From positions 930,001-994,000 of the forward strand of contig JBLDXI010000055.1 in NCBI GenBank assembly GCA_047495785.1: a stretch of 64,000 nt of DNA, given 5' to 3'. Position 1 is the stretch's first letter. Each line of letters begins with the position of its first letter. The DNA is from Lepidodermella squamata (Eukaryota; Animalia; Gastrotricha). Shown piece after piece: positions 12,732-57,401 of this stretch. The position numbers were made by a program, and so were the translations under genes. A model generated the notes under the pieces. The model did not search any database. It saw only the letters and a list, made by a program, of their open reading frames with translations, and was not told where the DNA came from.

Positions 12732-13819
12732 TTAATGCTTGGTTTCAGGCATTTTGATTTCGTCTTTTTTACCGCTTTCCAGCCATTGCGTGAATGTCAT
12801 CATTTTCGGGTTAAGCTTCCGGGACACATCAACGCTTCGAATAGCCGCCAAATCCTCGGCACAATCGTTGAAAAACTGGAACATATTAGCAAGCTCGACA
12901 GCGCCCTTGAATGGCAACTTGCGATAGTCGTCGTAGCTGATCTGGCGAAATCGAATTTCTCGCCCGAGCGAATACGCAATTTTAGCGGTCATTTCCTTCA
13001 TGGACAAAAACTCGCCGCAAATCGCCACTCGCTTGTTGATGTACTCATCAGGGCGTTGAAAAATGTCGAGTGCACATCGGCCAATGTCATCAGACGCAAT
13101 GCCGGGAATTCGGGTGTCTGGCTCGATCGGCAGAGCGATTTCAAGCTTGCCGTCATCGCCGATTTTCGGCGCCAGCAGCTGCAGAAAGTTGTCCCAGAAG
13201 AATGCGGTTAGCATATAGGTGGTTGGAACGTTGTACTCTTCAAAGAAATGATCAGCCTCGCCTTTTGCGTCGCACTGTGGTACCTTGTAACGCTCGCCGG
13301 CGCCGAGTGACGGCATTGCTAAGCTGGTCAAAATCGGCAATCGGCGCCGGGAATCTTCGAACGTCGACCAAATAGCATGTTTAACCCCGGCCAAGCTAGA
13401 AAATTGATAGTTTCAGCCACATTTTGAGGAAATTTAAGATCTAACCTAGCTGCCCTGGCCATATTCTCAACCTGTCGAAGTTCATCGTCAGGATCCATGC
13501 GTTCCCAGAAGAATGAGACGCAAAACACGCCGTAGACGCCATCGAAAGCTTTCACCAAGGAGTCGAACACACGAACGTCACCGTGAACAACTTCAACACC
13601 TCGCTGCCGCAATTGATCGGCTTTTTCCGACGACTCGTCACGCGTTATTGCACGCACGGTGAAACCATTGCGGTCACCGCTTTCTAAAATTGCATTCACC
13701 AAGCTGCCACCTTTGCGAAAACCGAAAATGAAAATGTTTGAGATTAGATGAATAATGAAAATTGTACCTTGATGGCCAGTGGCTCCAACCACAGCCAATA
13801 CTTTAGTGCTACCAATCAT
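12732..13819 (-). CDS. NmrA/HSCARG-family protein, copy 1 (3 exons)
   Basis: VVGATGHQG Rossmann motif, RAITRD, WSTFEDSR, ANMFQF; introns 13767-13711 and 13445-13396. Confidence 0.9.
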
Positions 13820-13987
13820 TGTCAAATCAACGCGAAATGTTGAAAATTGATTTGTTCTCAAGCAAGTAGGAATGAGTTTCGTTGAGTTCTTAGAAGGACA
13901 CGGGGTTCGTGTAAGATCTTTGTTGCGAATAACAGCGAATTATTCTCTGGGTTATGTTACGTGTTTGAAATGACTCATCAACAGACA

Positions 13988-14059
13988 AGCAGAGTGGCGC
14001 AGTGGAAGCGCGCTGGGCCCATAACCCAGAGGTCTGTAGATCGAAACTACGCTCTGCTA
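13988..14059 (+). tRNA. tRNA-iMet (CAT), initiator
   Basis: AGCAGAG/CTCTGCT acceptor stem with A1-U72, GGG/CCC anticodon stem around CAT, GATCGAAAC T-loop of eukaryotic initiator tRNA; T-run terminator follows. Confidence 0.97.
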
Positions 14060-14161
14060 TAAATGTCCAACTTTTTTTATTTCGAATAGCTCACCGCACA
14101 GCGATAGAATGTTGTCCAAGTCAAGCTTTTCCCTAATTTTCACTTAAATTTGTTTTGTTAA

Positions 14162-15861
14162 GATAAGAGGGTCCCAGAAGAATGGTCAACGGCTATAATT
14201 ACCCCAATTTATAAAAATAAAGGTGAGAAATCAAAATGCCAAAATTACAGAGGCATCAGCCTCTTAAGTGTTGTAGGAAAACTCTATGCCATTATTCTCG
14301 AAAGAAAATTGAGACTATTAATTGGGTCAAAAATTTCTAAACTGCAATTTGGTTTCCAACCCCTCAAGGGCACCAGAGACTGCATTTACGTTCTCCGACA
14401 AATTATTGAGAAAATTATATTCTTTAAGAAGGAACTCCACCTAGTCTTCATCGATCTCGAAAAAGCCTATGATCTGGTGGACAGGGAAAAAGTATGGGCC
14501 GCCCTCCAAAATATGGGTGTAGAACCCAGCTTAATTGAAGCTATTCAAAGTTTATATAAAGTAAATAAAGTTGCTGTTAGAGTCGATTCTGAGCTCTCAG
14601 ATTTCTTCTATGTTACCAGGGGACTAAGACAGGGTTGCCCGTTGTCTCCTTTGCTATTCATAGCGACCTTCAACAAAATTTGCGAAAAAATATCTGCTGA
14701 AAAATTAGGCTTTCCTATTAGCGAGACCGCAAACAGCGAGACCGCTATGAGCGCGACTGATTTCCTAAATTTACTAGCGTTTGCGGACGACGGAACACTT
14801 TTAGGCATGAACCACGACGAAATTGCACGACTACTTCACATTTTCGATTTGGCTTGCACCGAATTGGGTCTGAAAATTAACGCGGCAAAAACTCAATATA
14901 TGATTATTTCTAGAGACGAGTCAGCTACTCAAAATTACGAATTGGAATTGAACGGGAAAAAACTTGAAAAAGTGACCAAATTTAAATATTTAGGGAGTAT
15001 TATTACTAGTGACGGCAAAATCGATGAGGAACTAAACTACAGAATTTCTAAGGCAGGCAGTGTTTTCGGCGCCATGAACAAATTCATGTGCAACAAAAGT
15101 CAGGTTTCCATAGCCACAAAACTTAAAGTACTGACATGTGTTATAATACCTACCATCATTTACGCCTGCGAATCGTGGAACATATCGATAGCCCAAGAAA
15201 ATAGACTAAACACTATAGAATATCGATGGCTTCGATCTATAGTAGGTGTCCACCTAATGGACTATATTCCAAATATAGACATTCGACTTGCGTTATGCGA
15301 AGGTCTCATTGAAGTGAGCCGCATAGTTGAAAAACAAAGGCTAAGATATCTAGGTCACATAATTAGGTCACGTGACTATGACGCAGAAGGACTAATACAC
15401 AAAATATATATTTGGACGCCTCCGCTTGGGTGGTTTGCACCCAGAGGTAGACCTCGAACCAGATGGATCAACGGAGTGCATAGAAGCCTTATTAAAGTAG
15501 GTCTTACTAAGGAAATTCGCCGGAAAAAGAAAACCAATAAGGAAAATAAGGTCAAGGATAAGAAAAATAAAACCACCAAGAAACGAGAAAATAGAAAAAA
15601 TCCCGGCGAAAAGGATTTTGAGATCAAAATTATTCCCGATGTCCAACTAGCGGAATCGGTTTCTTTCGAAAAAGATGAATGGCGCATGGTTGTAAACTCG
15701 ATTGAAAATTACGAATTCTATACAAAAAGCAGAATCCTCGACTGTGGGGGTGGGTGAGGATCATTCTTCGCCTGCCTTCGCCCTCTTCAAAACCGGAAAC
15801 GGTACACGACGCTCAGTCTCGAAGAGGCAAAATAAAACTATTATTATTATTATTATTATTA
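14162..15861 (+). mobile_element. 5'-truncated RTE-like LINE with (ATT)n tail and 12-bp TSD
   Basis: Open frame from RVPEEWSTAIITPIYKNKG..NYRGISLL through QFGF, FIDLEKAYD, GLRQGCPLSP, FADD, FKYLGS, RGRPRTRW; TSD TTGTTTTGTTAA at 14150-14161 and 15862-15873. Confidence 0.93.
14309..15757 (+). CDS. LINE reverse transcriptase (partial; endonuclease missing)
   Basis: RT motifs with FADD catalytic box; frame extends upstream to about 14163. Confidence 0.9.
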   Translation: MRLLIGSKISKLQFGFQPLKGTRDCIYVLRQIIEKIIFFKKELHLVFIDLEKAYDLVDREKVWAALQNMGVEPSLIEAIQSLYKVNKVAVRVDSELSDFFYVTRGLRQGCPLSPLLFIATFNKICEKISAEKLGFPISETANSETAMSATDFLNLLAFADDGTLLGMNHDEIARLLHIFDLACTELGLKINAAKTQYMIISRDESATQNYELELNGKKLEKVTKFKYLGSIITSDGKIDEELNYRISKAGSVFGAMNKFMCNKSQVSIATKLKVLTCVIIPTIIYACESWNISIAQENRLNTIEYRWLRSIVGVHLMDYIPNIDIRLALCEGLIEVSRIVEKQRLRYLGHIIRSRDYDAEGLIHKIYIWTPPLGWFAPRGRPRTRWINGVHRSLIKVGLTKEIRRKKKTNKENKVKDKKNKTTKKRENRKNPGEKDFEIKIIPDVQLAESVSFEKDEWRMVVNSIENYEFYTKSRILDCGGG

Positions 15862-18137: not shown

Positions 18138-19976
18138 ATGTTTTTCTTTGCAATTTTATTGATTTTTATTATTGCACCGGTTTTCGCCGAAGATGAGAAT
18201 CTATCAAATTTGTTAGGATTCGGCTTTATTCCTCTGAATGGTTCAAAGCCGAATGATATATCTTCATTCGAAATTTCCTTGGACCCGGCGAATGGCAGGT
18301 TGGAAATCTCGACAATCCTATTGAGATTCGACACAGCTGCTACATTCAACATAAAGGTAGATATTGCTCTTCGCCACCTGTTCAGTGCGCCATCACCTAT
18401 CGCCGAGGGTTCGATATCATGGTTGACTCGACCCGAATCGCCTTCCTTGCCAACATTTGCGATAAATGGCAGCTCTGAATTTATATCCCACGCATTCCAC
18501 AATTGTAATGTATCGCCAAATTTATCAAGTTTGGAAATGCCTATTCCAGAGGGTGAATGGAAATCTGCCGGCGGAAATTCAAGAAAAGTCCTGCTTCTCA
18601 AACTGCCAACGCGAAAATATTCGACCGACATGAACGGAGAACCTTACACAATAGCGATGTCATTGATTGTCGGCGAAGAAGGAGTTGAGATGCAGCAATT
18701 TATCCCAGAGATTGGAGGATGCCATATATTTTCCAACTTGCAAATGGCGTCCAGTCAAATAATAGTTGCCCCGCTCAAACTGACCATCAAAACTATTGGA
18801 AATCTGAAAGCTAATAGCCAATTGATTGCCTTTGAAGATGACTCCAAAAAGTTAGCGAAAATGCTCGAGGGAAAGTCTAATACTAAAGAGGCGTGGAATA
18901 AATTTGTTCAATTTCTCGAAGCAGAAGGTTGTCCTCGACTTGAGAACTGCAAGCCCTATTTGTTATCGGCTCACCCTGATTATCGGCGATTTCACGAATT
19001 CGGCTGCCGGATGCCCTTAGATCAAAATAAAGCAAATGAGCATGCATGGTGGCAGTGTGGTATGGGTTCCAGGGATTCCTACGGCAATTTGCGCCGTCGA
19101 ATATCGGTGAATCCAGAATTGACCGATCACACTCGACTCGCCTGCTACAACTTCGAAGATTTACGGCGACTTCGGTTGAATCCTATTGTTACATGGCAAT
19201 GGTTTGATGAATTAAATCAGGCTTTTCAAACGATTTCCGGCGGTCCAGATGAACCGGGAGAGTTGAACGAATTTGACTCGAATGAATTGCTGATACCATC
19301 TTCCTGGAAGACCGACACGCTTTATCGATGTCTCGACCGAAATTCAAAGCCAGTCGTGGAGTACTACTTTGAAAATCCGAATAATTACCTGAGTGGGGTC
19401 CAATGTGAGTTAATGGATGCTGAAATAGTTAATGAATCAATCCGGCTTTGGTTCGGGGAAGAAAACTCAATGCGATTCTTGTGCTCTGGTTCATCTTCGG
19501 CGCTTGTTGTAGACAGCATTTCGACAAGCTTCATAGACGAGTATGACGGCTTTCCGGAATTTATATCTGAAAGCAATCTCATTACAGAAGAGGCTAAATA
19601 CTCGGAAGCAGAAAATGCAACGGTGATAGCAAGCCGTCGGTCTGAATCTGAGGATTATACAGTGAAAGCTACCATTCGAATAATGGGAAACTGTGAAGCG
19701 ACGACACACGAATGCCGCGATGTTCCCGAATACCACCAAACGAAACTTCAAATTATTCTCAATGTTGATAATGGAGCGAAGGTGGTAGCAAGGCAATATT
19801 ACGTTCATTGCTACCGGCGCGGGTTGATTGGCCGATCAGAATTGGCTGCAGTTAGATTCTGGAAAATGGCGCAAGAGTACTACGGCGATGCTTATAATTA
19901 CGCTATTGAATTCTATAACAAATATCTAGGTCAAACGGACGAACAGCCAGACGAAGAGGCACAATCTCCAGAATGA
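18138..19976 (+). CDS. Uncharacterised secreted Cys-containing protein, intronless; paralogue of 61601-63493
   Basis: Signal peptide MFFFAILLIFIIAPVFA; 612-aa ORF; shared motifs EFGCR/WWQCG/YGNLRRR/YRC/VVEYY. Confidence 0.8.
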   Translation: MFFFAILLIFIIAPVFAEDENLSNLLGFGFIPLNGSKPNDISSFEISLDPANGRLEISTILLRFDTAATFNIKVDIALRHLFSAPSPIAEGSISWLTRPESPSLPTFAINGSSEFISHAFHNCNVSPNLSSLEMPIPEGEWKSAGGNSRKVLLLKLPTRKYSTDMNGEPYTIAMSLIVGEEGVEMQQFIPEIGGCHIFSNLQMASSQIIVAPLKLTIKTIGNLKANSQLIAFEDDSKKLAKMLEGKSNTKEAWNKFVQFLEAEGCPRLENCKPYLLSAHPDYRRFHEFGCRMPLDQNKANEHAWWQCGMGSRDSYGNLRRRISVNPELTDHTRLACYNFEDLRRLRLNPIVTWQWFDELNQAFQTISGGPDEPGELNEFDSNELLIPSSWKTDTLYRCLDRNSKPVVEYYFENPNNYLSGVQCELMDAEIVNESIRLWFGEENSMRFLCSGSSSALVVDSISTSFIDEYDGFPEFISESNLITEEAKYSEAENATVIASRRSESEDYTVKATIRIMGNCEATTHECRDVPEYHQTKLQIILNVDNGAKVVARQYYVHCYRRGLIGRSELAAVRFWKMAQEYYGDAYNYAIEFYNKYLGQTDEQPDEEAQSPE

Positions 19977-20199: not shown

Positions 20200-21211
20200 T
20201 TAACCGCGAATCGGGATGAGATCTTTGTACTTGTTAAGCCAAGCGTCAAAGGTCAGCAAGTCGGGGCAAAGCTTGCGAGCCGTGTTCGGGCAGCGGATTT
20301 TCAGAACAGACTCTTCACACTTGGCGTAGTACAGCCACATGTTGGCAACGTCCTTGACGCCGGGGAAGCCGAATTTTCGGTAATCTTCAACGCTGATGTC
20401 GCGGTAACGAATGGTCTTGTTGAGGGCTCGGGACATTTTCTCCGCCATTTGGTTCACCGTCAATGCCTCGCTCATGATTCCGACTCGTTTGTTGGCGTAC
20501 TCGTTCTGATTCTTGAAGATGCTCAACGCGCACCTGCCAACATCTTCAGCCGACATGCCGCCGATTCGCTTCGAGCCCATGGGCAGCGCGATTTCGTAGT
20601 TACCATCCGACGACTTCTTAGGCTCCATGCCGAGATCGATGAAGTTCTCCCAGTAGAACGGCGTGATGAAGTAGGTGGTTGGGATGCCGGTTTCAGAAAA
20701 GAAACGATCAGCCTCGGCCTTGATATCGAATGGTGTCACCTTGTACTTGCCCGCAAGAATTGGGACATCGGGGTAACCCTTCAAAGCTTCACGAGTGTCT
20801 TCCAGGGTCGACCAGACAATGAACTTAATCCCAGCTTTTCTAAAATAATAAAATTGAATTTTTAACTCGATTTTCGGAGTCAAAGCTGATTTACTTGGCA
20901 GCGTTCGCCATGCTTCGAGCTTGTCTAAGCTCCTCGTCCGGGTTCATGTGGTGCCAATAGAACGTGACGGCGAACATGGCGTAGCATCCTCGGATCGCCT
21001 CGGTTAACCTATCTTCGTCGACCACATCGACTTCGCGCACTTCGATGCCGCTGGTTTTCAGCCATTGAGCGTTCATAGAACTGGTGTCTCTCGCGATAGC
21101 TCGAACCGCAAATTCGCAGTTATCGCCCTCTTCCATGATAGCGCGGACCAACCCAACGCCCTGGTGCCCAGTGCCACCAATGACAGCGATCAGCTTCTTG
21201 TCGCTCGGCAT
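20200..21211 (-). CDS. NmrA/HSCARG-family protein, copy 2 (2 exons)
   Basis: IAVIGGTGHQG, WSTLEDTR, FYWENF, FGFPG; intron 20894-20840. Confidence 0.92.
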
Positions 21212-24578: not shown

Positions 24579-27215
24579 TCAAGTTCTGATAGTTTTACGT
24601 TGGGCTTTAGCCATCATTTCCCGATAGTAGGCTCTCAATCGGTCTTTCTCTTTTTGCCAAGCCAAGTTGTCATCTTTCGACTGAAGAATACTTGCAGTAT
24701 CGTGATACGTCGGCATCTGTACATATTTTAAAGTAAGTAAATCGCACGTTTCAGAGAAATCAAACCTGGCTAGCAGTTAGACACTTTGCATCGCGCTCTA
24801 GGCCTTTGTTGTAGACAGCTTTGTTAACCATGACAACTTGGCAGTTGCCATTGCTGACAAAGAATATGTCAGGTTGTTTATTGACACCTAATGCTTTGGC
24901 TTGAATTCCGGTTTCTAAACTATCCTTCAACCACGGCTGAAGAGCATCAGTTACAGCAGTTTCCATGCCCTGGCAAAAAAGAGTCGATAAATTTGTCCGA
25001 AATTAGGTCAAATCGTAGGAAACTCACAAAGACAGCACCTGGCTCTGCTCTTCCTATCCTAGCAACAGTTACATTTCTCTCTCCACTGTCAGGAGTCGGG
25101 TGTGATTCGACGAAAACCAGCGGATCGTCGTCAGGCTGAATGGCCGGATAACTAATCGGCGGTATGGTTGTCGCCTCTTGAACTTTGGGATCAGTTGAAA
25201 ACGGCGTATTGCGCTGATAACGCCTCGGCACCGCCGTCAAAGCTCTGTTTCGAGGCGTTTTATCCCATGCCTCCGGCAACAGAAGCATGAACCCACTCGT
25301 ATCCGGCTCGTTATCCTGGCAGTGCTTATTCATCTTCCGCCACTCGTTTTCGGCCGGGTGTAACAGTGACAGTGTCTTCATATGCGTTTTGAACGGATCG
25401 CTGAGTTCACGCTCTTGTTTCCGGTGAGCTGACTCTTGACAAACGCCGTAAATATCTGCTGAACCCTTTTGAACAACACAGAAATATTTTGTTTTCTCCT
25501 TCGCAAGCGAGTGGCTGTCGATCATATCGGAGGCTGTCAAATTTGAGACTGCGAAATCGGAAGCTTTAGGGTCATTTTCGGCACGTTGCGGCTCTTTGCT
25601 TGCTATTATAGCGCCAGTTTGAAATGTCTGAACTTGCCACGATCTCTCGTCTGTTTTCAAATTGTCGAATTTAAAGTGTTTCAGCGTTTTGTGATCGGTG
25701 AAAGTTTGTTCAACGTCTTCAATACGGCATCGACCTAAAATAATTAAAATATAATTTTTACAGAAATTATTTTACAATTCCCAACCTTCAAGTCGATCTT
25801 TTGCTTCCAGGTAATCCTGTCTATTGATGTACAGTACCTCTGTATTGTCTTCATGCGTTACAACAGTAGCATTTCGCCGCAAATTGAGCACAACTTCGTC
25901 TTCACCGTAAATTTGCCCAATCGTAACCGATTTTTGTTCCGTTTCGCCCTCGCTCATTTTCGGCCGCAGAACTAAACTGCCCCATAGTACAATGTACCAA
26001 CCCTCAGATCTACGGCCGTATCGCGATAACACGCGGTTCTTTTCGTAAGAATCAAAAACTGCGATAGATGCGATTTCTTTTTGAAGTTGCAACGGGAAAC
26101 GGCGGAAAGACTGGAGTGTTTTAAGACATCGGACGATTTCGAGAATTTCCTCCGGCGATCGCTGGCCGACTTGCTTCATCAAAGACTGACGAGCAGCGGG
26201 TGTTAGGCACATAATGGCTGATTTTCTATCGACTCGATAATCGTTTTTGTTGAATCGCAGTTCAACGTAGGAGGATGAATCAACGGAATTGCTATCAACG
26301 GGCATTAACGTGACGAATTCGCAGCGGTCTTGAGCTTCGAGCTCTTTTTGAAACTTGCTCGAATCGGCCAGCAGCTGCTCGGACATTAAAAACCAATCTT
26401 CCTGTTTGACTTGAGCTGCAATCTCCCTGAAAAAACAGAGGAAAAGTCTATTAGGAAAATTCCGATAAATTAACGAGGTCAAAGCAAAAATAAATTAAAT
26501 TCACACGCTTTATACCAATGGCTTTCATTTGCTGTTACTCAGCATATCAAACAACTTGACAACAACAATAAAAACAAGCAATAAAACTCAATTAATCACT
26601 CAAAACTAAGTTCAAGCAACATGAATAACCCAAATCGATATCTTACTCTTCAACTGATTTTTTAACAATGCTAACAATATGGTTGTTATATGTGAAAGTT
26701 GAATGAAATCTCAAAGAAAAAAACCGAAATCTTTACCTCTTCCACATTTTGCACCAGTAGATAAGGTGACCGATAGCCCACGCCTTGCGCCGAAACATGT
26801 AGTACATGACTCGAGAGCGTTGCCGTTGAACATTGATGCCATGCCGTCGGTGAAATTCAGCCAGCGCGCTTTGTTGTTGCGCAACTGAAGATCGGCGGTG
26901 ATTAGATATTTGCCGCGTCAAACGCTGCTTCATCATTTCTCGAACCCGCGAACCTTCCTGGGTGACTTGAACCGGCGTAGGCGCCCTACTGCTGTTCGGT
27001 ACACTAAACGACCCGGCGGTTGACGGTCGCCGTCCATATGATAAATTGCTGTTAGTTCTAGTCAGCGGTAATTGCTGCTGGCCGGAGTTGGTTCTCGTTA
27101 AGGGCGATTGCTGTGACTGGGGGGTGTTCTCCACGATAACACCCAGGGCGCCGCTGTTCGTCCGGCCCAGTGGGGCACGAGGCGTTATGCTGTTAGATCT
27201 TGACAGCGGGATCAT
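24579..27215 (-). CDS. Cyclic-nucleotide-binding-domain protein (CNBD2-like), multi-exon
   Basis: WYIVLWGSL..GQIYGE..RRNATVVT..EVLYI cNMP fold; second split domain (RAEPGAVF|GME..VSNGNCQVVMV); GT-AG junctions; stop at 24579-24581. Confidence 0.75.
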
Positions 27216-41248: not shown

Positions 41249-42222
41249 TTAGAACCAAGCGAAATCTTTATCGCTCAAAGGTAGCGCAGGTGTCTTCAAG
41301 TCAGGGCCCCGGTAGAGTGCAACGATTTTATGCGGGTTGATCGCTTGCATGCCAAAGTATGTTCCAACCATAATTTGATCCATATCCATCGCGATGTCAA
41401 CGCCAGGAAGTTGCGCAATTTTCTTGGTCCAGGTAAAAATATTCGGATAGTCCTTTTCATCACGCAGCGACTTCAAATTTAGCTTGAAAAGCGGCTCGTA
41501 AAGAAACGGAACGCGGACAAGCCACGGAAATACCATGAGGTCGATTGCAGTCAGAACATTACCAGCTATGAACTGCTGCTTTCCAAGCAAATCGTTCAAG
41601 CGATCGAGCGAGCTGAAGAACATTTTAGCATTAGTTTCGTATTCTTCCTGGGTCTTGGCGAAACCAGCCGCATATGTCCTCATCACCATGTCATCCATCA
41701 ACGGCGGCAACAGTTCTTTTTCGATCTTGTCAGCATTGGCAATATTAGGAGGATAGAGGTTGATTTGCTTGCCTCCAATAAGACCATTGAAAGCCGTGTT
41801 GAATATGCGAACAATGTCGGCCGACTCGTTGTTAACAACCAGCTTCGTCTTAGAGTCGAACAGGGCTGGGAGCGAAGCAGGACCAGTGTAGTTAGGGTTG
41901 CCTAACAGGTAGATATCTTTCAAGAATTTAGCATTGATGACCGGATCGACGCCGACTTTAGCATCGAAACCCCATCCGTTTTCAGGGTCTCGGAGAGAAC
42001 TCAAAATAACGACCTTAACGACCTTCTCGAGTTTTTTGACAGCCCTAGCCAGCAAGGTTCGGTGAGCCTATAGAAATAGAGTTGCCGGCTATGAATGACA
42101 AAAAGTAAATAGCTTACGAATGGGCTGACAAGAGCGACGTACAAGACGTAACGATCCGCTTCAGGCTTGAAGGTCGGATGGTCGTCAGAAATAAATTCGC
42201 GAAATTGTGCCACAGCCGCCAT
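41249..42222 (-). CDS. Glutathionyl-hydroquinone reductase-like, copy 3 (catalytic Cys>Ser)
   Basis: LVSPF|AHR; AGC at 42126-42124; frame otherwise intact. Confidence 0.92.
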
Positions 42223-42925: not shown

Positions 42926-43971
42926 TTACATCCATGCATAATCGCTGTCGCTATGTGGAATAGCCGGAGTCAAAAGGTTAGGACCTCGGTAGATTGGCGC
43001 CATTCTCGACGGATTTACCGCACGCATATTATTGGCCATGCCGATCACAATGTCATCCATCTTCAGCGTTTCAGCAACACCGGGAACTTGCGCTACCCGT
43101 CGCAACCAGTTGAAAATATTCGGATAGTCCACGTTGTTTCGCAGCGATTTCAAGTTGACTTTGCACAAATATTCGAAGCAAGCAGGAATTCGTAAAATGT
43201 TGGGGAAGATGTTCAGGTCAGCTTCACTAAACACATCTCCAGCCAGGAATTTACGCTTCGAAAGCAGCTCATCGAGTTGATCAAGAGCTGCGAAAATCTC
43301 CCACGATATTTTATCAAACTCTTCTTGAGATTTTGCATTGTTGATGAAGTAGACCTTCATCGCGACATCGTTTACCAACCATTTGAGTCTCTTCTCACCT
43401 TCGGCAGCCAATTCAGGTGGGCTCAGATTGATTTGCTTCCCCTCAACAACACCATGGAAGGCGGTGTTGAGCATGTGAACAATTGCAGCCGAATCGTTGT
43501 TGACAATGGTGTTGGTCTTGGTGTCGAAAAGCACAGGAACTGAATAAGCACCGGTGTATTCCGGCTTGAATTTGTTGTAGATCTCCTTCAAGAACTTGGC
43601 ATTCATGACTGGGTCGACGCCGTACTTGGGATCGAATTGATAGCCATTGTCAGGATCGCGAAATGGACTCATAACAACGAGTTGAATGTATTTCTCCAAT
43701 TTCTTCACGGCTCTGACTATTATTGCTCGGTGGGCCTGAATAAAATTGAGCCGATTAACCCCTGAATCAAGGTTTGAAATTTAAAACTCACGTATGGGCA
43801 AACATAAGGGCCGTAGATGATGTAGCGACCAGCCTCAGGCTTGTAAATCGGATGGTCTTTCGAGATGACTTCGAGGAAAGGATCGGTCGTCATTTTATAC
43901 TTGCTTGACAGAAAACTTTTTGAGTAAGCAACTAGAGGCGAAAATATTCTGCGTTGAAAACTTGTCAGCAT
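42926..43971 (-). CDS. Glutathionyl-hydroquinone reductase, copy 4 (two in-frame ATGs: 43971, 43893)
   Basis: YVCPY|AHR, SVPVLFD, IVNNDS, YPNI, VNPSR. Confidence 0.9.
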
Positions 43972-44427: not shown

Positions 44428-45644
44428 ATGTCTGCAAAGAAAGTTATTTCGATTATTGGAGCGACCGGCAAGCAGGGTGGAGCTCTGCTTCGTGCAATTC
44501 TGAACGAGGGCGCTTCGAGTGAATTTATTCCTCGAGCTATCACCCGTGACTCATCATCCGAAAAAGTAGGCAGCTTGATTTTTCCGACCCACTTTGCCAG
44601 ACATCAGCTGAGATTTTTCGAGAAAAATTGATAAAACGCTAGTGTTAGCCTAAAATCGTGGACAAATGTTGGCTTGATAAATCCTTATCGGGCTTTTTGC
44701 CTTATATTTCTGAGCCAACTGGTCACCTTTTCCTTATATTGTTATCAAACTATTAGCCTTTGTAATTACTTTTGTTTCAACTTAAAGGCACAAGAATTGA
44801 AGAAACTCGGTGCTGAATTGGCCCAAGCTGATGCCAATGACATTCCTGCCCTGACAAATGCCATCAAGGGCTCTTATGGCGTCTTCGTTGTATCCATGCT
44901 CGACTTCGGAGACACTGAAAAGGAGATTGCCCAGGCGAAGAACATGGCCGAGGCTGTTAGGTAATAAGGGAAAATCACAATTACCCACAGTTTTAATAAT
45001 AATTAATTCTCTAAAGGAATGCCGGGGTCAAGCACGTGATCTGGTCAACGCTCGAGGACACTCGCAAGCAGTTTCCTTTGGAAAGCACCCATTTGCCGAC
45101 GATCCAAGGCCGATTCAAGGTCCCCCATATGGACTCGAAGGGGGAATCTGACGCCTTTTTCGCTGACCTGCCAACTACCTATTTGCTGACCTCATTCTTC
45201 TGGGACAACCTCCGTCCTAACGGTTTTGTCCGTAAATACCCCGACGGCAAGCTTTACATCACCCTGCCGGGTTTTGATGACAAGAAAATGCCTGGAATTT
45301 CGACGGAAGACATCGGCAAATGTGCTTTGACTATTTTCAAACGCCCTGAACTTATCAACAAGCGCATCGCCATAGCCAGCGATCACGTGAGCAAAGCTGA
45401 CATGGCGGCGATTTACAAGAAGGTTCTCAACGTCGACGTCTTTCCTGGCAGCGTTACCTTTGACGAATTCCGCCATCAGGGTTTCAAAGGCGCCGATGAT
45501 CTTGGCAGCATGTTCCAATACTTCCACGATTCGCCCGATTTTCGTCAAGTGCGCAGTGTTGAAGAGACGAAAAAACTGAACCCGGAACTGCTGTCCTTTG
45601 AACAATGGGTCGTCAAAAACAAGGACACCTTCAAGTTCACCTGA
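44428..45644 (+). CDS. NmrA/HSCARG-family protein, copy 4 (3 exons)
   Basis: Exons 44428-44565, 44788-44960, 45017-45644; IGATGKQG, WSTLEDTR. Confidence 0.92.
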
Positions 45645-45787
45645 ATGGAAAACACTTTCGATTCCAATTAACTACAACTGAACTATGTTGTGTATAACAA
45701 CTGCAATCTTTGATAAATTTATCAGAAATTAAAATTGAATTTTGCTTGCAAATTAATGTTTTTATATAATAGACATTTTTTTGAATA

Positions 45788-46609
45788 ATGACTCGGGTAG
45801 CTGTCGTCACTGGTTCGAACAAGGGCCTAGGGTTGTCAACTGTTAAACAATTGTGCCAGCAAAACCCAAGCTGGATTGTCTACCTCACATCGCGCGACAA
45901 GCAACGCGGCGAAGAAGCTGTAAATCAGCTCAAATCTCTTGGCCTCAATCCTCGTTTCCATGAATTGGATGTTCAATCTGTAGAAAGCATTCGGGCTCTT
46001 CGTGATCACCTTAAAGCTGAGCATGGCGGTCTCGACGTGCTGGTTAACAATGCTGGTCTGGCTTTCCTGAAAGACTCACCCGAACCGTTGTCTGAACAAA
46101 TTCGGGTGACCCTGGCAACTAATTATTACGGTGCTCTTTCCGTTTTCACCGAATTAGCACCGATTTTGCGAGACCATGCTCGTGTGGTAAATGTTTCAAG
46201 CCGACTGGGTCACACGATCTACGGAAAGTTGTCACCCCAACTTCAGGAGGAGTTCAAGAAATGTAAAACTATCGAAGAGCTGAACAAACTCATCAACGAT
46301 TTCGAGGTTCAGCAGGAAAAGCACGAAGCTTCTGCCTCGGTATTCGGCAATTACGGAATGTCGAAAATCGGCCTAACGGTTGCTTCGGCCATCCAACAAC
46401 GGCAACTGGACGCTGATAAGTCGCGTAAAGGCCTGATTGTCAACGCGTGCTGCCCTGGTTTCTGCAAAACGGATTTGAATAAAAATTCAGGAACTCGTTC
46501 TGCTGATGAGGGAGCTGAGACCATTGTCTACCTGGCGACTCTGCCGGAGAACAGCACCGAACCACGTGGTCGATTTGTCAATGAGAAAGTTGTTAATGAC
46601 CTGTTTTAA
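45788..46609 (+). CDS. CBR1: Carbonyl reductase [NADPH] 1-like, intact
   Basis: TGSNKGLG, LVNNAG, VVNVSS, YGMSK, NACCPG; intronless. Symbol denotes family, not proven orthology. Confidence 0.92.
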   Translation: MTRVAVVTGSNKGLGLSTVKQLCQQNPSWIVYLTSRDKQRGEEAVNQLKSLGLNPRFHELDVQSVESIRALRDHLKAEHGGLDVLVNNAGLAFLKDSPEPLSEQIRVTLATNYYGALSVFTELAPILRDHARVVNVSSRLGHTIYGKLSPQLQEEFKKCKTIEELNKLINDFEVQQEKHEASASVFGNYGMSKIGLTVASAIQQRQLDADKSRKGLIVNACCPGFCKTDLNKNSGTRSADEGAETIVYLATLPENSTEPRGRFVNEKVVNDLF

Positions 46610-46747
46610 TTAAATGCGGTGCAAAAATTGCTTTATCATTTCCACGATTATAACTCACGATTCATTCATAAATTAAATGAGTAAAAACCACAATGATGCA
46701 CGGATTTTTGGCCTAGTTTTTTTTATTAGCACGAGCGATGTTTTTAT

Positions 46748-46766
46748 GGGTTAACTTTCTAGGTCA
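46748..46766 (+). promoter_or_regulatory. Putative DR7 element GGGTTA-n7-AGGTCA
   Basis: About 80 bp upstream of ATG 46843; spacer ACTTTCT versus AATTTCT in the paralogue promoter. Confidence 0.5.
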
Positions 46767-46842
46767 AACGAGTTTTCAACAGCAGCAATAGGGCAGCTTC
46801 AGTTTAATAATTTTTCCTTTCAAACTGTCAAAGTGAATTTAA

Positions 46843-47676
46843 ATGGCCGCTCGAGTTGCCGTAGTCACAGGGGCTAACAGAGGACTGGGCTTTTCTCTAG
46901 TCAAACAGCTCTGCCAGCAGAAGCCAAACTGGACCGTTTACCTCACAGCCAGAGATAAAGGTCGAGGCGAGGCAGCCGTGGCCCAACTTCAGTCGTCAGG
47001 CTTGAAACCGCGATTTTACCAACTCGATGTTGAATCGCCTCAAAGCATTCAAACCCTTGGTAATTACCTTAAATCTGAACACGGCGGCCTTGATGTCCTT
47101 GTCAACAATGCTGGAATAGCATTTCCTTTCGGGTCCAAGTTTTCTTTCGGTGAGGAAGCTCGTCGAATTTGCGCGACGAATTACTTTGCAGCCACTGCGG
47201 TGAGCAAGGCACTGTTCCCTCTTCTTCGCGATCATGCCCGGGTCGTTTATGTTTCAAGTCGCATCGGCCACACAGCTTTTTCGAAGCTATCTCCTCAGTT
47301 GAAGGAGGCGTTCAAGAGCTGCAAAACTGTCGAAGAGTTGGACAAATTAATTGCAGAGTTTGTGAGGCTGGCCGGCGAAGGTAAGCATGAAGCTGCTGGT
47401 TGGGTGAAAGCTGATGGCCTGGGAATTTCTAAAGCTGGACTCACCGTCGCGACGTACATTCAGCAGCGGCTTTTGGATGCAGATAAGTCGAAAAAGGACA
47501 GGATTGTCAACGCCTGTTGCCCTGGTTGGTGCAAAACTGACATGACTGGAAACAAGGGAACGAAAACGGCTGACCAGGGTGCTGATGTTATGCTTTACCT
47601 GGCAACGCTGCCTGATAACTGCGACCAGCCCCGTGGCCGCTTTGTAAATGAGCGCAAGATCAATGACATGTTTTGA
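46843..47676 (+). CDS. Carbonyl reductase 1-like lacking the catalytic Tyr
   Basis: TGANRGLG, NNAG, CCPGW intact, but YxxxK reads LGISK. Confidence 0.9.
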   Translation: MAARVAVVTGANRGLGFSLVKQLCQQKPNWTVYLTARDKGRGEAAVAQLQSSGLKPRFYQLDVESPQSIQTLGNYLKSEHGGLDVLVNNAGIAFPFGSKFSFGEEARRICATNYFAATAVSKALFPLLRDHARVVYVSSRIGHTAFSKLSPQLKEAFKSCKTVEELDKLIAEFVRLAGEGKHEAAGWVKADGLGISKAGLTVATYIQQRLLDADKSKKDRIVNACCPGWCKTDMTGNKGTKTADQGADVMLYLATLPDNCDQPRGRFVNERKINDMF

Positions 47677-47889
47677 AAATTTCCTAATAAAAATGAGTTG
47701 AATCATCAGTTGAATAATTTCCAGAGCGCCGTTTGAATTCATAAATAAATCTCGAAAATCATAAATCTCAAGAATTTTGCCATTTTACTTAAAAAAAAAT
47801 CACCGGGTAAAATGTTCATGGTTTGGCAATATATTTCACAACAGGTTCATGATTTCTAGATTAAACCAAATTCACGGACTTTGGATGCC

Positions 47890-48881
47890 CTACTCGAACC
47901 AGCTGAAGTCTTTCTCTGTCAAAGGTAGAGCAGGAAAATTGAAGTTTGGACCTTGGTACAGACGTGGTACGATTCTTGACGGCTTTAATGGATTCTTAGC
48001 CGATTTTCCAATGTAGTAGCCTTCTTGTATCACTTTTGCATCAACTAATGCTGCCGAACCGGGAATCTGATAGATTTTCCGAATCCACTTAGAAATGTTG
48101 GGATAATCAACGCTGTGACGGAACGATTTCAAGTTAAGGTTGTAGTAGTGTTCGAAAACAACTGGCAATCGGTAAATCCATGGATAGACGTTGATATCGG
48201 CAGCAGTTAAAACATTTCCAGTAATAAATGTCTGGTCTTGGAGAATGGCTTCAAGTCGATCCAGGGCTTCGAACAGATTCCTACAGTGATAGTCGTAATC
48301 AGTTTGCAATTTAGCCTCGCCGGCTGAATAGATGGCATTGATGATTTTCTCGCCAATCCATGGCATCCAATTATTATTGATATCATCCGTGACGTTAGCC
48401 GGATATAAATCGATTATTTTTCCACTGAGAAGCCCATTGAAAGCTGAGTTGAATGTGTAAACGATGTCGGCTGATTCATTGCTGACAATGGTCCGAGTCT
48501 TGGAATCGAAAAGCATCGGAACGGTGACTTTTCCCTTGTAATCAGGGTCGCTCAATATATAGAGCTCTTTCAAACTCTTTGCGTTCATGATGGAATCAAT
48601 GCCGTATTTAGGGTTGAATGACCAACCGAGAATTGGATCGTACGAAGAGTCAACAATTACGACTTGGACGAAATCGTCGAGCTTCTTCAAGAGTCTCGCC
48701 AATAGAGTTCTATGTGCCTACAAGGTTGAGTTGAATTTGAATAAAAAATTATTTCAAGCAGTTTTGGTGCTAAACTCACGAATGGGCATACGACGGCTAC
48801 GTAAAGGATGTACCTGTTCGCTTCTGGTTTGTAAACTGGATGGTCCACAGAGATGACCTCTCGAAAAGAGTTTGGAGACAT
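47890..48881 (-). CDS. Glutathionyl-hydroquinone reductase, copy 5
   Basis: VVCPF|AHR, VTVPMLFD, IVSNESADI, INAIYSAG, EGYY. Confidence 0.92.
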
Positions 48882-50366: not shown

Positions 50367-51421
50367 ATGTCTGCTGCCAAGAAAATTATTTCGGTCATCG
50401 GTGCCACTGGCCAGCAAGGTGGTGGTCTTCTGCGAGCTATCACGAGCGAGGGTGCTAATGGGCAATTCATCGCCAGAGCTCTAACCCGTGACGTCAATTC
50501 GAAAAAGGTTCGTAATCCTCAATTATTTTTATTTTAGTGATTGATTGATTTGTTTAATCATCAGGCGCAAGAGTTGAAGAGCCTTGGTGCCGAAGTTGTC
50601 CAAGCTGATGTCACCAATGAAGCCGGTCTGGTCGAGGCTATCAAGGGCTCGTATGGCTTGTTCTGCGTCACCGCGCTCGAGGCGAATGACCCATCGAAAG
50701 AAACTGAGCAAGCCAAAGTCATGGCTTCGGCTGCTAAGTAAGTTTTGCCTATACAAAATAATTCTGTTCTTAATCTAAAATTTTCATATTAACCAGGAAA
50801 GCCGGTATCAAACACGTTGTCTGGTCGACACTTGAGGACACTCGGAAACAAATTCCTCTCGAAAGTACCAGCATGCCGACCCTATTCGGGAAGTACAAGG
50901 TTCCCCATTTCGATGCTAAAGGTGAAGCTGACAAGTACTTTGCCGATTTGCCGACTACTTACTATTTGGTACCGTATTTCTGGGAAAATATCATCAGCGG
51001 CGGCCCGCGCAAGGGTCCCGATGGCAAGTTGTACCTGACCATTCCGATGGGTGATAAGCACATGCCGGGTATTGGCACTGAAGATATCGGGAAGTGCGCG
51101 TTTGGCATTTTCAAGCACCCTGAACTGATTGGAAAGCGCGTCGGCGTCGCTGGCGAGCATTTAACCATCGCGCAAATGGCTGAGAAATTGTCGAAAGCTC
51201 TGGGCAAAGAAATCCATTACCACAAAGTTTCTTTTGACGACTTCAGGAAATTCCCGTTTCACGGAGCTGAAGAATTCGGCAACATGTTCCAGTTCTACCA
51301 CGACACCGAGCCAACCTTCCGCGCGGCTCGAAGCGTTGAAGAGGGTCGCAAGTTGAACCCTGAAATCAAGAATTTCGATCAGTGGCTGGCTAAAAACGGC
51401 AGCAAGATTGTTATCGAATAA
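50367..51421 (+). CDS. NmrA/HSCARG-family protein, copy 5 (3 exons)
   Basis: Exons 50367-50507, 50565-50737, 50797-51421; TATA at 50281. Confidence 0.92.
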
Positions 51422-51967: not shown

Positions 51968-53022
51968 ATGTCAGTTTCCAAGAAGGTTATCTCAATCGTT
52001 GGTGCCACTGGGCAGCAAGGCGGCGCCCTGATGCGAGCTATCATCAGCGAGGGCGCCAATGGACAATTCGTCGCCAGGGCCCTGACTCGAGATGTAACTT
52101 CCAAAAAGGTATATTGATAGCGTATTATTGTTTTAAGTGATTATACATACCTATGCCATTTTTACAGGCTGTGGAACTCAAAAACCAAGGCGTTGAAGTT
52201 GTACAGGCCGATATTAATAAGGAGGACGATTTAACTCAAGCTATCAAGGGTTCTTATGGCCTATATTGCGTCAGCACGTTGGATCTTCACGAGCCTGCCA
52301 ACGAGACCGAGCAAGCTCGGATCATGGCTTCAGCTGCCAAGTTTGTGTTAATCATTCCTGTAAAATCGCATCTATAAAATTAGTTCATTAGAGCTGCTGG
52401 TATTAAGCATGTCATCTGGTCAACGCTCGAAGATACTCGAAAGTTAATCCCACTGGAGAGCACAAGCATGCCGACTTTATTTGGCAAGTATAAAGTCCCT
52501 CATCTCGACGCGAAAGCTGATGGTGATAAATTTTTCGCCGATTTGCCCGCAACTTACTTGATGACGCCCTTCTTCTGGGAAAACTTCCTAATCAAGGAAA
52601 TGGCTCCAAAAAAGCTGCTGTTTGGGAAGTATATGATCGGACTACCGATGGGGCAGAAGGCTATGGCTGGAATCTCTACAGCTGACATCGGAAAATGTGC
52701 GTTGGGCATTTTCAAGCGTGAAGACTTAATCGGCAAACGAATCGGCATCGCCGGCGAGCATCTGCCGCTATCCGAAATGGCTGAAAAAATGACAAGAGCT
52801 CTTGGAAAGCACATAATCTATGTTCCGATTCCCTTCTTTTTGTTTCGAAGATTTCCGTTTCCCGGCGCCGTTGAATTCTCCAATATGTTTCAGTTCTTTC
52901 ACGATTGCGAGCAACAATTTCTAGCGGCGAGGAGTGTTGAACAATCTCGCAGTATCAACCCAGAGTTGAAAAATTTTGATCAATGGTTGGAGGAATTTAA
53001 GAATAAAATTCCGCTGGCTTGA
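51968..53022 (+). CDS. NmrA/HSCARG-family protein, copy 6 (3 exons)
   Basis: MSVSKKVISIVGATGQQG; same two intron positions as copies 3-5. Confidence 0.92.
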
Positions 53023-53386: not shown

Positions 53387-53668
53387 ATTTACAAAGTTTA
53401 TAGCTTTGCCTTATTTTTTTGAGGTTTGAAAAAAAATAAAGCGCACCAGAATATACGAGTGGATGCTGAAAAGGAAATCGATCCAAACATAGGAAGTGAT
53501 GGGCGTGTGCGGTTTTGGCTGTCAGCTATAAATTCAAAAGTCGACTTCGCTCATTAAATTCTGAGTTTTATTGCTACACTTAATGCGGGCAAAATTTGAA
53601 TTCAATGCATGACAGTGTTCAGCTGGGTGATTTAATAGTAAATAGTTCGATGATGATTAGGAATAACT

Positions 53669-54713
53669 TCAAGCTGCAATTTTGATTTTATCCTTGTTCT
53701 TAGACAGCCACTGGTCGAAGTTCATCAGTTCGGGGTTTAGCTTAGCAGCGACCTCGACGCTTCGCGAAGCTCGAAAAGCGACGTCACAGTCGTGGTAGAA
53801 CTGAAACATGTTGCCGAGGTCTTCAGCACCGGGGAAGGGCATTTTCCGAAAATCGTCAAACGGCACCGGCACATAGGTAATCACACGTCCCATAGCCTTC
53901 GACATTTTCTCCGCCATTTGCAGCAGAGTCAAATGATCGCCAGCAACACCGATCCGTTTTCCGATTAAATCTTGACGCTTGAAAATGCCCAGCGCACATT
54001 TCCCGATGTCAGTTGTAGAAATTCCGGGCATAATCTTCCGTCCCATCGGCACTGCTAAGAGCAGCTTGCCATCGGGGCCTTTTCTCGGGCCGAATCCGGC
54101 GCTGAGGAAATTCTCCCAGAAAAATGAAGTCATGTAGTAAGTGGTTGGGAGACTTTCAAAGTATTTATCCCCATCAGCCTTCGCATCGAAATGAGGCACC
54201 TTGTACTTGCCAAACAACGTCGGCATGCTCTTGCTCTCGAGCGGGACCTGTTTACGGGTATCGTCCAAGGTTGACCACACGACATGCTTGATTCCCGCAG
54301 ATCTGTGAATTTAAAAAATTATTTAAATTTGGACGTTATAAATTAGCTAACTTGGCAGCTGCTGCCATGATGCGGCATTGCTCGGTTTCTTGCGACGGGT
54401 CACCGTGACTCAAAGTTGTGATGCAGAACAAGCCATGCGAGCCTTTAATAGCCGCAGCCAAGTCCTTCTCGTTGTTCACATCGGCCTTCACAACCTCGGC
54501 GCCGTGCTTCTTCAACTCCTTTGACTATTTCCAAAATTTAATAAAATTCAGGGAAAATCATTGATCAATCATTACCTTTTTCGAAGTATCATCTCGTGTC
54601 AGAGCTCGAGCAACGAATTGGCTGTTGCTGCCCTCTTTGCCGATAGCTCGTAGTAGAGCTCCGCCCTGTTGGCCAGTGGCTCCGATGATCGAAATGACCT
54701 TTTTGCTCGCCAT
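53669..54713 (-). CDS. NmrA/HSCARG-family protein, copy 7 (3 exons)
   Basis: MASKKVISIIGATGQQG, WSTLDDTR, VPHFDAK, GNMFQF; same two introns. Confidence 0.92.
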
Positions 54714-56400
54714 TTTAATTACTGCTGTTTATAAATACTACTTAACACATCGTTGAAAATTCAATGGCACATGAAACAAATCGCGTGCTTTGATAAGATG
54801 AATGAAACATTGGGAAATGTGGAAAAATAGCACGAGCATTTTGTTAAAACTAATGCGCACAAGCTGTTGTAAAAGATTCATTCAAAATGAGTGAATTGCT
54901 GTCTCTCTTGCGGTTAACTAAAAGAATTTGCATATCACCCGAGAATAGATGAAGAAACCCGACATCATGCTCGGAAACATTTGGAACAAGCAATTGTAGA
55001 GCTCAGAGTATTACATATTTTTTAGAGATGCTAGAATCCGAAATATAATTACGCGTATTTTCTGCTTCCATCCTGCTGAATGAGCAGTCCTATACGAGGC
55101 CGCTGATACTAGGCCTGCATTCCTATATATATTAGGATTTTTTTCATTACAGCAGTGGCAACGCCATTATTATGATATGCGGAGCATACTCAAGCTTATT
55201 ATACGGTTTTACTATAATAATAAGACCGTTGAATAGGGTTGCCAGATATAACTGGGTGTTGTTTATGCGATAAAAAAAAGCCTGGGATTTTTGCACGCAA
55301 TAATGGAGAATACAAGAGGGGAAAGTCCGAAGGACAAGTTCCAGATTTTTTCCGATTAATGCTATTCTTCTATCAGCGATTCTATGTAATTAGCTGAGGA
55401 AATAATGAAAAGAAATGTTGGCAAGCTGATTTCTGTGACCAGAAATCGCATATGGTGTTTTTCGGCCGAATTTCGGGAAATTTGTATGGCAATTCGAATG
55501 TTGTAGGGCATGAAAGAATACAAATTTTGCGAACTCTACCTAATGTGCATGAGTAGAAAAACAGCCTAATTATATGGAACATCCACCTAATTAGAGCGAA
55601 TATTCAGTAATCTTTAATCATAAAACCTCCCAGGGAAAATGATTGAAAAATAATGATAAAAAATCCCCGAATTCATGGATTTGTATAAATGGATTTATTA
55701 TCAAGAATAGCCTTATGAGAGTCTGGGTTCACCCTATTTTGATTTTCCTTTATTAATGTACCCTTTCCTCTTTCGTATCAGTTGCCGCAGTCTATCATCC
55801 AATATATGTCGTTCTCTTCGCGGTGGCCTGAGAACTTCACTGGTCTACAACTTGTCCTCAATGTTGTTCTTTATAGCCACTAAAGTACTAGTTTTGAACA
55901 GTGGCTAAACTTATACATTATTCAAATCAATGATATGGATTTCCGATCTTTACAGCAGTTGTAGAAAAAGATACACGTGCTTTTATTATCGCCGGTGATG
56001 ACAAAGTTACAATTTGCCTTCGGGAAAAGCGCAAATATTGAAACCGCATGTGAAGATTTTATTTGAGAGACATTTCGAGTTTACTTTCAGAGTGGCGAAG
56101 CATTTTTTTACGATCCACGCTGCGATTATTTGCTGTTAAACTCGTATCCACACAGACGTTGAGTTGCGTATAATTAATCAATACCTACAGAGGTGCAGAG
56201 TAACATCTCGCCTTTCTCCTGCGAATTAGTGGCTCTGATGAAAACGTTAGACGTTCTAAATCTTTCCTAAGCTTGAGATGGATTAATTTACGCAACACGA
56301 GACGAATTTCTTGAGCTTTTCGCAAAATTCTCGCCTAATCTGTACACAAAATTATAACGGAATTTCAGTTCGCATTCGATTTTTTTGCCAACATTTTTAG

Positions 56401-57401
56401 ATGTCGAAAAAAGTTATAGCAGTCGTCGGCGCGACTGGGGCTCAAGGTGGCGGCTTGATTCGAGCTATTATGAGCGAGGGTGACCAAAGCGAATTCACAG
56501 CTAGAGCCATCACTCGAGACCCTGAATCTGTTGCGGCTAGAAAGCTAGCTGATTTGGGCGTCGAAGTCGTCAGAGGCGACATTAACGACGAAACGGCTTT
56601 TGCTTCGGCTATTCAGGGCGTTTACGGACTGTTTTGTGTCACCCTATCGGGTTATGAAGACTACTCTCCAGAGCAAGAAATCTGCCAGGCTAAAGTCATG
56701 TCAGCCGCTGCTAGGTATATTAATTCTTATATTCTTTTATTTTAATTTAAAAAATTAATTTTCAACTCAGAAATGCTGGCATAAAGCATGTGATTTGGTC
56801 GACTATGGAGGACACTCGTCTGAAAATTCCGCTTGAAAGTAACGTTATGCCAACATTGAACGAGCGCTTCAAGGTGCCTCATTTCGACTCGAAAGGTGAG
56901 TCTGATCAATTTTTCGCCGACCTGCCAACAACCTATTTGCTGACTTCGTTCTTCTGGGAGAACTTCATCGACCTGCAAATGGGCCCGAAGAAGTATTCAG
57001 GCCAGCTTTATCTGCCACTGCCGATCGGGAAGAAGCGCCTGGCGGGCATTTCCTCGGCTGATATCGGAAAATGCGCGCTTGGCATTTTCAAGCAGCCTGA
57101 GGATTACATCGGCAGACGCGTCGGAATAGCTGGCGAAATTTTGACTCTCGCGGAGTTGTCTCATAAAATGACGGACTCACTCGGCAAATCAGTCGTACCT
57201 TACGAAATGTCGTTCAAAGAATATCGCAAATTGCAATTCGAGGGCGCCGATGATTTTGCGAACATGTTTCAATTTCTCCACGATTTTGAGGAGGACTACT
57301 GCGGCGCGCGGAGCGTTGAGGAATCGCGAAAATTGAACCCTGACCTCATGAATTTCGATCAATGGATGGAGAAGAACAAAGACCGCATCCCGTTGAAGTG
57401 A
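56401..57401 (+). CDS. NmrA/HSCARG-family protein, copy 8 (2 exons)
   Basis: VVGATGAQG; intron 56716-56770; WSTMEDTR. Confidence 0.92.

Follow-up and report, generated by a model that had tools for sequence, protein, structure and literature searches.

The 64,000-nt stretch of the gastrotrich Lepidodermella squamata genome analysed here (hereafter the window; C55:930001-994000) lies within the 2.08 Mb contig JBLDXI010000055.1 (C55) of a 121 Mb assembly and carries an interleaved set of genes from several redox and stress families. Genes were located by six-frame clustering of open reading frames (ORFs) combined with Pfam and Protein Data Bank (PDB) sequence searches, and gene models were built by reading three frames. 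The Pfam families recovered were NmrA (PF05368), GST_N_2/GST_C_2, adh_short, FMO-like and HSP20, corresponding to eight open NmrA-like genes, five Xi-class glutathione S-transferases (GSTs) resembling glutathionyl (GS)-hydroquinone reductases (GHRs) together with a remnant, three genes related to carbonyl reductase CBR1, a canonical flavin-containing monooxygenase (FMO), and small heat shock proteins (sHSPs). An initial annotation of this DNA had named the redox families and counted eight NmrA, five GHR and three CBR genes and an FMO between positions 12732 and 57401; the Pfam domains and the best PDB matches (Xi-class GSTs, human CBR1 and HSCARG/NMRAL1) bear out these identities, the counts are the same, and both ends of the range coincide exactly with NmrA-like genes. 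Short GT..AG introns within open models were found in all eight NmrA-like genes (two to three exons) and in all five GHR-like genes.

At its left end the range holds two NmrA-like genes, N1 (12732-13819, minus strand; three exons, open frame, 55 of 80 bacterial near-invariant residues kept in the last exon) and N2 (20200-21211, minus; two exons, open), whose sister is a copy at C55:918 kb, followed by an sHSP gene with an HSP20 domain and apparently two exons (27934-28985, minus). The gene map shows that the unrelated redox families are truly interleaved, and the layout NmrA(+) CBR(+) ... GHR(-), reported earlier at 30712-34934 and 44428-48881, is present at both places. The first copy consists of N3 (30712-31822, plus; 74 of 80 residues kept), C1 (32084-32914, plus), a small orphan gene with an ORF of ~138 residues and no Pfam match (33013-33637, minus), and G1 (33964-34934, minus). 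It is followed by the canonical multi-exon FMO (36030-37901, minus), which spans positions 1-504 of the profile and has only one canonical counterpart elsewhere in the genome, by the C-terminal remnant of a GHR-like gene (38696-38848, minus), and by the GHR-like genes G2 (39295-40268), G3 (41249-42222) and G4 (42926-43893), all on the minus strand. The second copy, with two CBR genes, comprises N4 (44428-45644, plus; three exons, divergent, 55 of 80 residues), the single-exon C2 (45788-46609, plus), C3 (46843-47676, plus) and G5 (47890-48881, minus). The range closes with N5 (50367-51421, plus), N6 (51968-53022, plus) and N7 (53669-54713, minus), each of three exons, and the two-exon N8 (56401-57401, plus). 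Further sHSP genes stand beside it at 57876-58502 (plus), 60607-61314 (minus) and from 63906 onward; the canonical FMO inside the range and the sHSPs inside and alongside it are thus where the initial annotation had placed them.

Four public sequencing runs were compared with window positions 30600-35100. Two of them were cDNA; a poly(A) tail was seen in one run and a SMART oligo at loose ends in the second. One member of each redox family, N3, C1 and G1, was transcribed in the same cDNA libraries. In run X3 the N3 cDNA contig lacked two introns, 30848-30901 and 31080-31188, and had its poly(A) site at 31909, and the same joints were seen in runs X2 and X7, the latter from a close relative in which the same N3 intron is present. 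The G1 cDNA was spliced at 34776-34831, exactly after the codons of its CPF motif, the C1 cDNA was colinear with the genome, and the minus-strand orphan gene between C1 and G1 was likewise spliced in cDNA (intron 33166-33223). The N3 contig from run X3 begins (window 30666) with a leader of 20 nt, GGAGAACGGGGGATATTCAT, that the genome lacks; it probably derives from an adaptor or a chimera and does not represent a spliced leader. Given how closely the NmrA and CBR genes are spaced, an operon and trans-splicing were considered; both were rejected, since N3 is polyadenylated at a site of its own and the leader is non-genomic.

The best matches of the NmrA and GHR proteins outside this genome are bacterial, as would be expected if bacterial contamination or a chimeric assembly had placed bacterial-type genes beside animal genes. 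Against such an artefact, cDNA contigs, with a poly(A) tail, confirm the GT..AG introns, all paralogues share intron positions, and along a contig of 2.08 Mb they are intermingled with genes for CBR1, FMO and sHSPs of the alpha-crystallin type. An independent DNA run, X1, resolved two haplotypes a few percent apart, with small intergenic indels in 30600-35100. Spliceosomal introns, spliced and polyadenylated cDNA, two haplotypes and the relative's N3 intron together exclude contamination or misassembly, which we consider extremely improbable; the genes are real, spliced and equipped with their own TATA promoters. Run X1 also indicates that the source organism was markedly heterozygous.

When 190 kb of flanks were added and the families mapped onto them, the window proved to be the core of an island of ~170 kb (C55:849-1017 kb; 44 family genes in 168 kb). 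The island contains 17 NmrA, eight GHR-like, three CBR and eight sHSP genes, four short single-exon FMOs, one FMO fragment, the canonical FMO, and three secreted orphan genes. Within the window, a short single-exon FMO of the bacterial Tmm/plant GS-OX type lies outside the annotated range but belongs to the island (4854-6158, plus). Although these ~170 kb make up 0.14% of the 121 Mb genome, they hold eight of the 11 GHR-like copies (nine of 11 are on C55, the ninth at C55:762 kb), 17 of about 40 NmrA copies, three of six CBR1-clade genes, and four of 13 short and one of two canonical FMOs, half of all FMOs being on C55. Because such large shares of the families sit in so small a part of the genome, the co-location of their main arrays is not a product of chance, and the physical adjacency of non-homologous enzyme genes exceeds chance. 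The linkage is not repeated elsewhere in the genome: in genome-wide searches, NmrA arrays on contigs C34 and C4 had neither GHR nor CBR with them, a second CBR array on C54 had neither NmrA nor GHR, and the basal GHR pair on C42 stood alone.

The initial annotation had proposed the locus as a candidate metabolic cluster, co-regulated and serving the detoxification of phenolics and quinones or quinone production. In a true cluster of this kind, NmrA, CBR, GHR and FMO would be linked steps in the detoxification of quinones and GS-hydroquinones or in quinone production, and selection would maintain adjacency and co-regulation. The non-random co-location of the main arrays fits this proposal, as does the compatible chemistry of the families (GHR, CBR1, and NmrA-type azo or quinone reductases) and the transcription of all three in the same libraries. 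The separation of the families on C34, C4, C54 and C42 speaks against it. So does the setting of a CBR homologue (55-56% identical) in eukaryotic metagenome contigs, where its neighbours are the housekeeping genes ARS2, SVIP and ATG7. The neighbourhoods of bacterial NmrA homologues showed no GST or SDR (short-chain dehydrogenase/reductase) genes, which gives the proposal no help and is otherwise uninformative.

The promoters of the three redox families share a sequence word. Within the window GGTCAAATTT is found five times without mismatch, always in sense orientation, upstream of the start codons of G1 (two copies, at 35008 and 35034), G2 (40343), C1 and N4 (44266), against 0.58 expected in 64 kb at the genome rate of 1102 sites in 121 Mb. 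These copies lie ~75-165 nt before the start codon; among members of the three families the word stands 80-165 nt ahead of it, or up to ~270 nt in a few copies, and often just before a TATA box; its consensus is T(A)GGTCAAATTT, with an extended form T(A)GGTCAAATTT(CTGGGTCAA). The core GGTCAAA was found in sense orientation in eight island promoters, belonging to exactly the NmrA, CBR and GHR families, against 1.6 sites expected, and in none of the eight sHSP or four short FMO promoters of the same island; it was present in two of 74 control ORF upstream regions. Off the island it occurs in nine of 17 NmrA promoters, in one CBR promoter on C54 and upstream of a GHR gene on C42, and any regulon therefore does not need a physical cluster. 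Upstream of the start codon of C1 and past the poly(A) site of N3, the promoter word reads GGTCAAATTTCTGGGTCAAC (31941-31960, plus). A longer word, GGTCAAATTTCTG(G/A)GT(C/T)CAA, is present at this site and in two C34 NmrA promoters; one idea is that it resembles a direct repeat of two nuclear-receptor-type half sites, and our guess for the factor behind the word would be a protein of the nuclear-receptor type.

A second element, the E-box CACGTG at -95 to -215, was found at 15 sites in 13 of the 44 island genes (GHR, NmrA, short FMO and sHSP), against 1.1 expected, and in one of 17 off-island NmrA promoters. Window positions include 35070, 35112, 40435, 42412, 44030, 50201 and 51804; two copies precede G1, and N5 and N6 each carry one, at -166 and -164.

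Taken conservatively, three unrelated families have one exact 10-mer in common, with orientation and position alike, which suggests a common trans-acting regulator of NmrA, CBR and GHR genes. The restriction of the word to exactly these families would also fit a pathway cluster, with the reservation that the word is equally frequent in off-island promoters. On co-regulation, then, the initial annotation gains indirect support from the shared word in all three families, but the word is as common in off-island NmrA promoters and does not single out the clustered genes.

The same words might instead belong to a general grammar of inducible TATA genes, the families having come together neutrally as fast-duplicating genes in a duplication-permissive, rearrangement-poor region. 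In line with this, GGTCAAATTT is over-represented 3.8-fold genome-wide (1102 sites against 293 for a reversed control) and is thus not private to these genes. Yet only ~3 of 20 random genomic word sites preceded a sizeable ORF (the only Pfam match was a fragment of a Cid1 poly(A) polymerase; this sample is uninformative on the regulon). A general grammar also sits poorly with an exact 10-12-mer kept in one orientation and position by the TATA box in three unrelated families, and with its absence from the island's own sHSP and short-FMO promoters. Moreover, two of the three word-bearing families are foreign and can have gained their promoters only in the host.

The NmrA-like proteins are 57-63% identical in their last exon to bacterial NmrA/HSCARG proteins, as close as the paralogues are among themselves, and the island copies form one clade against bacteria in the tree. 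Candidates for horizontal transfer listed for a sponge include NmrA-like domains (PMC4784904); this was the only paper found to mention NmrA-like transfer candidates, and a search for literature on NmrA or GHR in tardigrades or bdelloids returned none. The GHR-like proteins reach no more than 43% identity with any sequence from outside the genome, and their best matches there are mostly bacterial; all 11 copies form one clade, with the C42 pair branching at the base, outside the nine C55 copies, and the active-site intron is common to the nine modelled copies. The CBRs are ordinary animal CBR1 relatives. The suggestion that the locus was partly built from foreign genes consequently stands for at least the NmrA family, which is bacterial-type (~60% identity), monophyletic against bacteria and intron-bearing, but not for the CBRs.

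Synonymous divergence (dS) is saturated for most pairs of duplicates, and the ratio of nonsynonymous to synonymous divergence (dN/dS) is 0.14-0.21 in the youngest pairs; the duplicates are ancient and under purifying selection. Self-comparison of 254 kb of DNA gave single-gene matches only, at 65-82% identity, with the exception of two sHSPs at 96%. These sHSPs (C55:863541-864327 and C55:995439-996228) lie 132 kb apart in inverted orientation, and the GHR genes neighbouring them are only 65% identical to each other, which indicates that a recent duplication or gene conversion affected the sHSP alone. Co-duplication of FMO+NmrA or sHSP+GHR pairs was also considered and is unsupported by the trees and the DNA comparison.

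In the trees, N3 groups with copies at 896, 900 and 903 kb and N4 with N5-N7, while G1 groups with G2 and G3 and G5 with the copy at 865 kb; C1 and C3 are the only sister pair among the genes of the two NmrA-CBR-GHR layouts. As N3 and N4, and likewise G1 and G5, belong to different deep clades, the two layouts do not stem from one recognisable three-gene duplication, and duplication of the triplet as a block is rejected both by the trees and by the lack of multi-gene DNA similarity. A gene order that arises twice, apparently without recent block duplication, could mean selection for adjacency, as a pathway cluster would predict. It is, however, repeated only twice, and with two instances a selected independent assembly is indistinguishable from coincidence in a dense array. 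The uniformly single-gene scale and old age of the duplicates, which leave no reconstructable multi-gene unit, are in keeping with neutral co-location, as are the unrelated genes and retroelements inside the island. Retention of the word across paralogues with saturated synonymous sites is harder to reconcile with it. On balance we regard neutral co-location as possible but doubtful.

Insights into the likely activities of the GHR-like proteins came from an alignment of the full-length models with canonical bacterial and brittle-star sequences, using as a yardstick the strictly conserved CPWA motif and the triad of tyrosines described for GHRs (PMC5063366). Animals have been said to have no GHRs (PMC5063366, PMC6345682), yet one brittle star has an annotated YqjG-like gene. 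The window proteins clearly belong to the Xi class by overall similarity and by their N- and C-terminal GST domains (GST_N_2 and GST_C_2), a membership they share with PcpF, E. coli YqjG, yeast ECM4 and PcGHR1; their PDB matches range from 1e-41 to 7e-48, with PcGHR1 (3PPU) at E 7e-48 and YqjG at E 4e-46. Like those enzymes, most keep the catalytic Cys (four of the five) and the first two triad tyrosines (the first in four of five, being Phe in G2; the second in three of five, being Phe in G4 and G5). Unlike them, none has CPWA, which is replaced by CPFA (G1, G2, G5), CPYA (G4) or SPFA (G3, in which the catalytic Cys has become Ser); G5 alone retains the third triad Tyr, lost from the other four, and the His adjoining it is lost in all five. 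Across C55 as a whole the copies read CPF or CPY, with SPF in G3. A ~30-residue N-terminal extension is absent and a three-residue insertion is present. Also distinctive are the phase-0 intron within the active-site motif and the expansion into an 11-copy animal family.

In other GST classes, a switch from Cys to Ser turns a reductase into a conjugating transferase. One C42 copy, alone among the GHR copies in having a confirmed canonical site, retains CPWAHR and the whole Tyr triad. It belongs to the pair at C42:3603473-3612038, where the modelled gene has GGTCAAA 221 and 361 nt upstream.

The CBR proteins match human CBR1 best in the PDB (E 4e-69) and are 45-56% identical to animal CBR1 over their full length, but only C2 is canonical. 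C2 has an intact frame and shares with human CBR1 (1WMA) and animal CBR1/CBR3 the Gly-rich TGxxxGxG loop, the NNAG motif, the Ser and YxxxK. The other two local copies depart from this pattern, and a further array is present on C54. C1, although transcribed, has an in-frame TGA at codon 16 (32129-32131), within the TGxxxGxG NADPH loop; the rest of its frame is open, and the listed cDNA and second-haplotype differences include none at this codon. C1 is probably an expressed pseudogene that looks recently disabled. C3 has an open frame with Leu in place of the catalytic Tyr and, judged from this replacement, may be a non-catalytic or re-purposed copy.

The NmrA-like proteins match HSCARG/NMRAL1 in the PDB (E 1e-21), and all eight window copies have a full-length PF05368 domain and the GATGxQG loop. 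They share these features with the bacterial 316-aa NmrA/HSCARG proteins, with NMRAL1 and with an NmrA-type flavin-free azoreductase, but differ in bearing introns, in numbering ~40 copies, and in how well they keep the bacterial near-invariant residues, of which 54-74 of the 80 in the last exon are retained among window copies and 48-74 across the island, N3 being highest. To our knowledge, no biochemical function has been established for the nearest bacterial relatives.

These active sites bear directly on the proposed pathway. The CPWA Trp is missing from all window GHRs, the third Tyr and the adjacent His from most, and the Cys from one, while the canonical copy is on another contig; C1 is truncated by a stop, C3 has lost its catalytic Tyr, and a single intact CBR remains. 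Remodelled or broken sites of this kind fit parallel diversification of enzymes, not a conserved linear GS-hydroquinone pathway. Together with trees that do not resolve the genes into modules and with families unlinked elsewhere, they speak against a shared quinone/GS-hydroquinone pathway, the central proposal of the initial annotation. A selected single-pathway cluster is unsupported by the active-site, phylogenetic and genome-wide linkage evidence, and as judged from these predicted sites we consider it improbable.

The explanation we favour, with a little better than even confidence, is an old, lineage-specific stress/redox island of ~170 kb whose three redox families share a regulon. Tandem arrays of at least six families would have become interleaved here: bacterial-type NmrA-like NAD(P)H-binding proteins, divergent Xi-class GSTs, CBR1-type reductases, short and canonical FMOs, sHSPs and secreted orphans. 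The NmrA, CBR and GHR-like genes may be under one transcription factor as a battery against electrophiles, oxidants or xenobiotics, their products acting in parallel on diversified substrates and not as consecutive pathway steps. NmrA proteins and CBR2-type copies would carry out NAD(P)H-dependent reduction, and CPF-type GSTs could perform Cys-dependent thiol transfer or deglutathionylation. The interleaving itself may have built up over a long time through local duplication of single genes and rearrangement in a permissive region, with shared regulation possibly stabilising it. A bolder version, in which bacterial NmrA and Xi-class GSTs and a native CBR1 were brought onto one promoter element and kept interleaved over a very long span as a co-induced electrophile/quinone module, with the CPF-type proteins as a new functional Xi subclass, is in our judgement rather unlikely; it would make the locus a real animal metabolic cluster of several families, some of its genes being foreign.

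Several points weigh against a stress/redox island with a shared regulon. The expression evidence consists of assembled contigs and speaks to presence only; in each of the two cDNA runs the depth of the N3 contig is ~100 times that of the C1 and G1 contigs, but such depths cannot rank the genes. The control promoters are crude, being taken from the first ATG of long ORFs, many of which are probably internal exons, and paralogous promoters are not independent, so that the motif statistics overstate significance. We know of no factor for the GGTCAAATTT word.

The island also holds unrelated genes, which count against the same reading: a gene with a cyclic-nucleotide-binding domain (24947-26482, minus), a two-exon PfkB-family sugar kinase (58753-60056, minus) and retroelement ORFs, comprising a reverse-transcriptase ORF (RVT_1; 14309-15757, plus) and a zinc-knuckle ORF (1707-2492, minus). 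Retroelement remains of this kind lie both within and next to the island, with further reverse-transcriptase fragments at C55:877, 902, 1038 and 1051 kb, and an ankyrin-repeat gene lies at 6214-7620 (minus). A family of predicted secreted proteins of ~610 residues is encoded at window 18138-19976 (plus) and 61601-63493 (minus) and at C55:998728-1000425 (plus). Its members have a signal peptide, many Cys residues and N-glycosylation sites, and no Pfam or PDB match; Pfam and PDB searches with orphan proteins of 612 and 407 residues likewise gave none.

Adjacency of non-homologous enzyme genes is familiar from plant and fungal metabolic gene clusters and from a few animal biosynthetic clusters, such as the octocoral terpene clusters. 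The gastrotrich locus resembles these in its mixture of enzyme families, some of them foreign, and in its hints of shared regulation. It differs in having no defined product or ordered pathway, in consisting of many-copy arrays where those clusters have one gene per step, and in that members are remodelled or broken and the families unlinked elsewhere in the genome. A likeness may also be found in the anhydrobiosis-related islands of Polypedilum vanderplanki and in the tandem GST, CYP and UGT detoxification arrays of animals, which are likewise dense local expansions of stress families, some of them horizontally acquired. The present island is distinguished by its set of families (NmrA, Xi-class GST, CBR, FMO and sHSP), by copies that are ancient, not recent, and by a promoter word in three of the families.

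The locus is not yet an animal metabolic gene cluster, but it is a well-defined and testable candidate, and it carries the caution that family names alone overstate the coherence of a pathway. It documents an expanded Xi-class GST family with a remodelled active site in an animal, in a kingdom said to lack GHRs, and the C42 pair offers a natural contrast for enzymology. If the word marks a real regulon, the locus would show the domestication of horizontally acquired bacterial enzymes in an animal, which would have gained introns, TATA promoters and the cis-element of a native reductase family, and would then have multiplied into dozens of copies.

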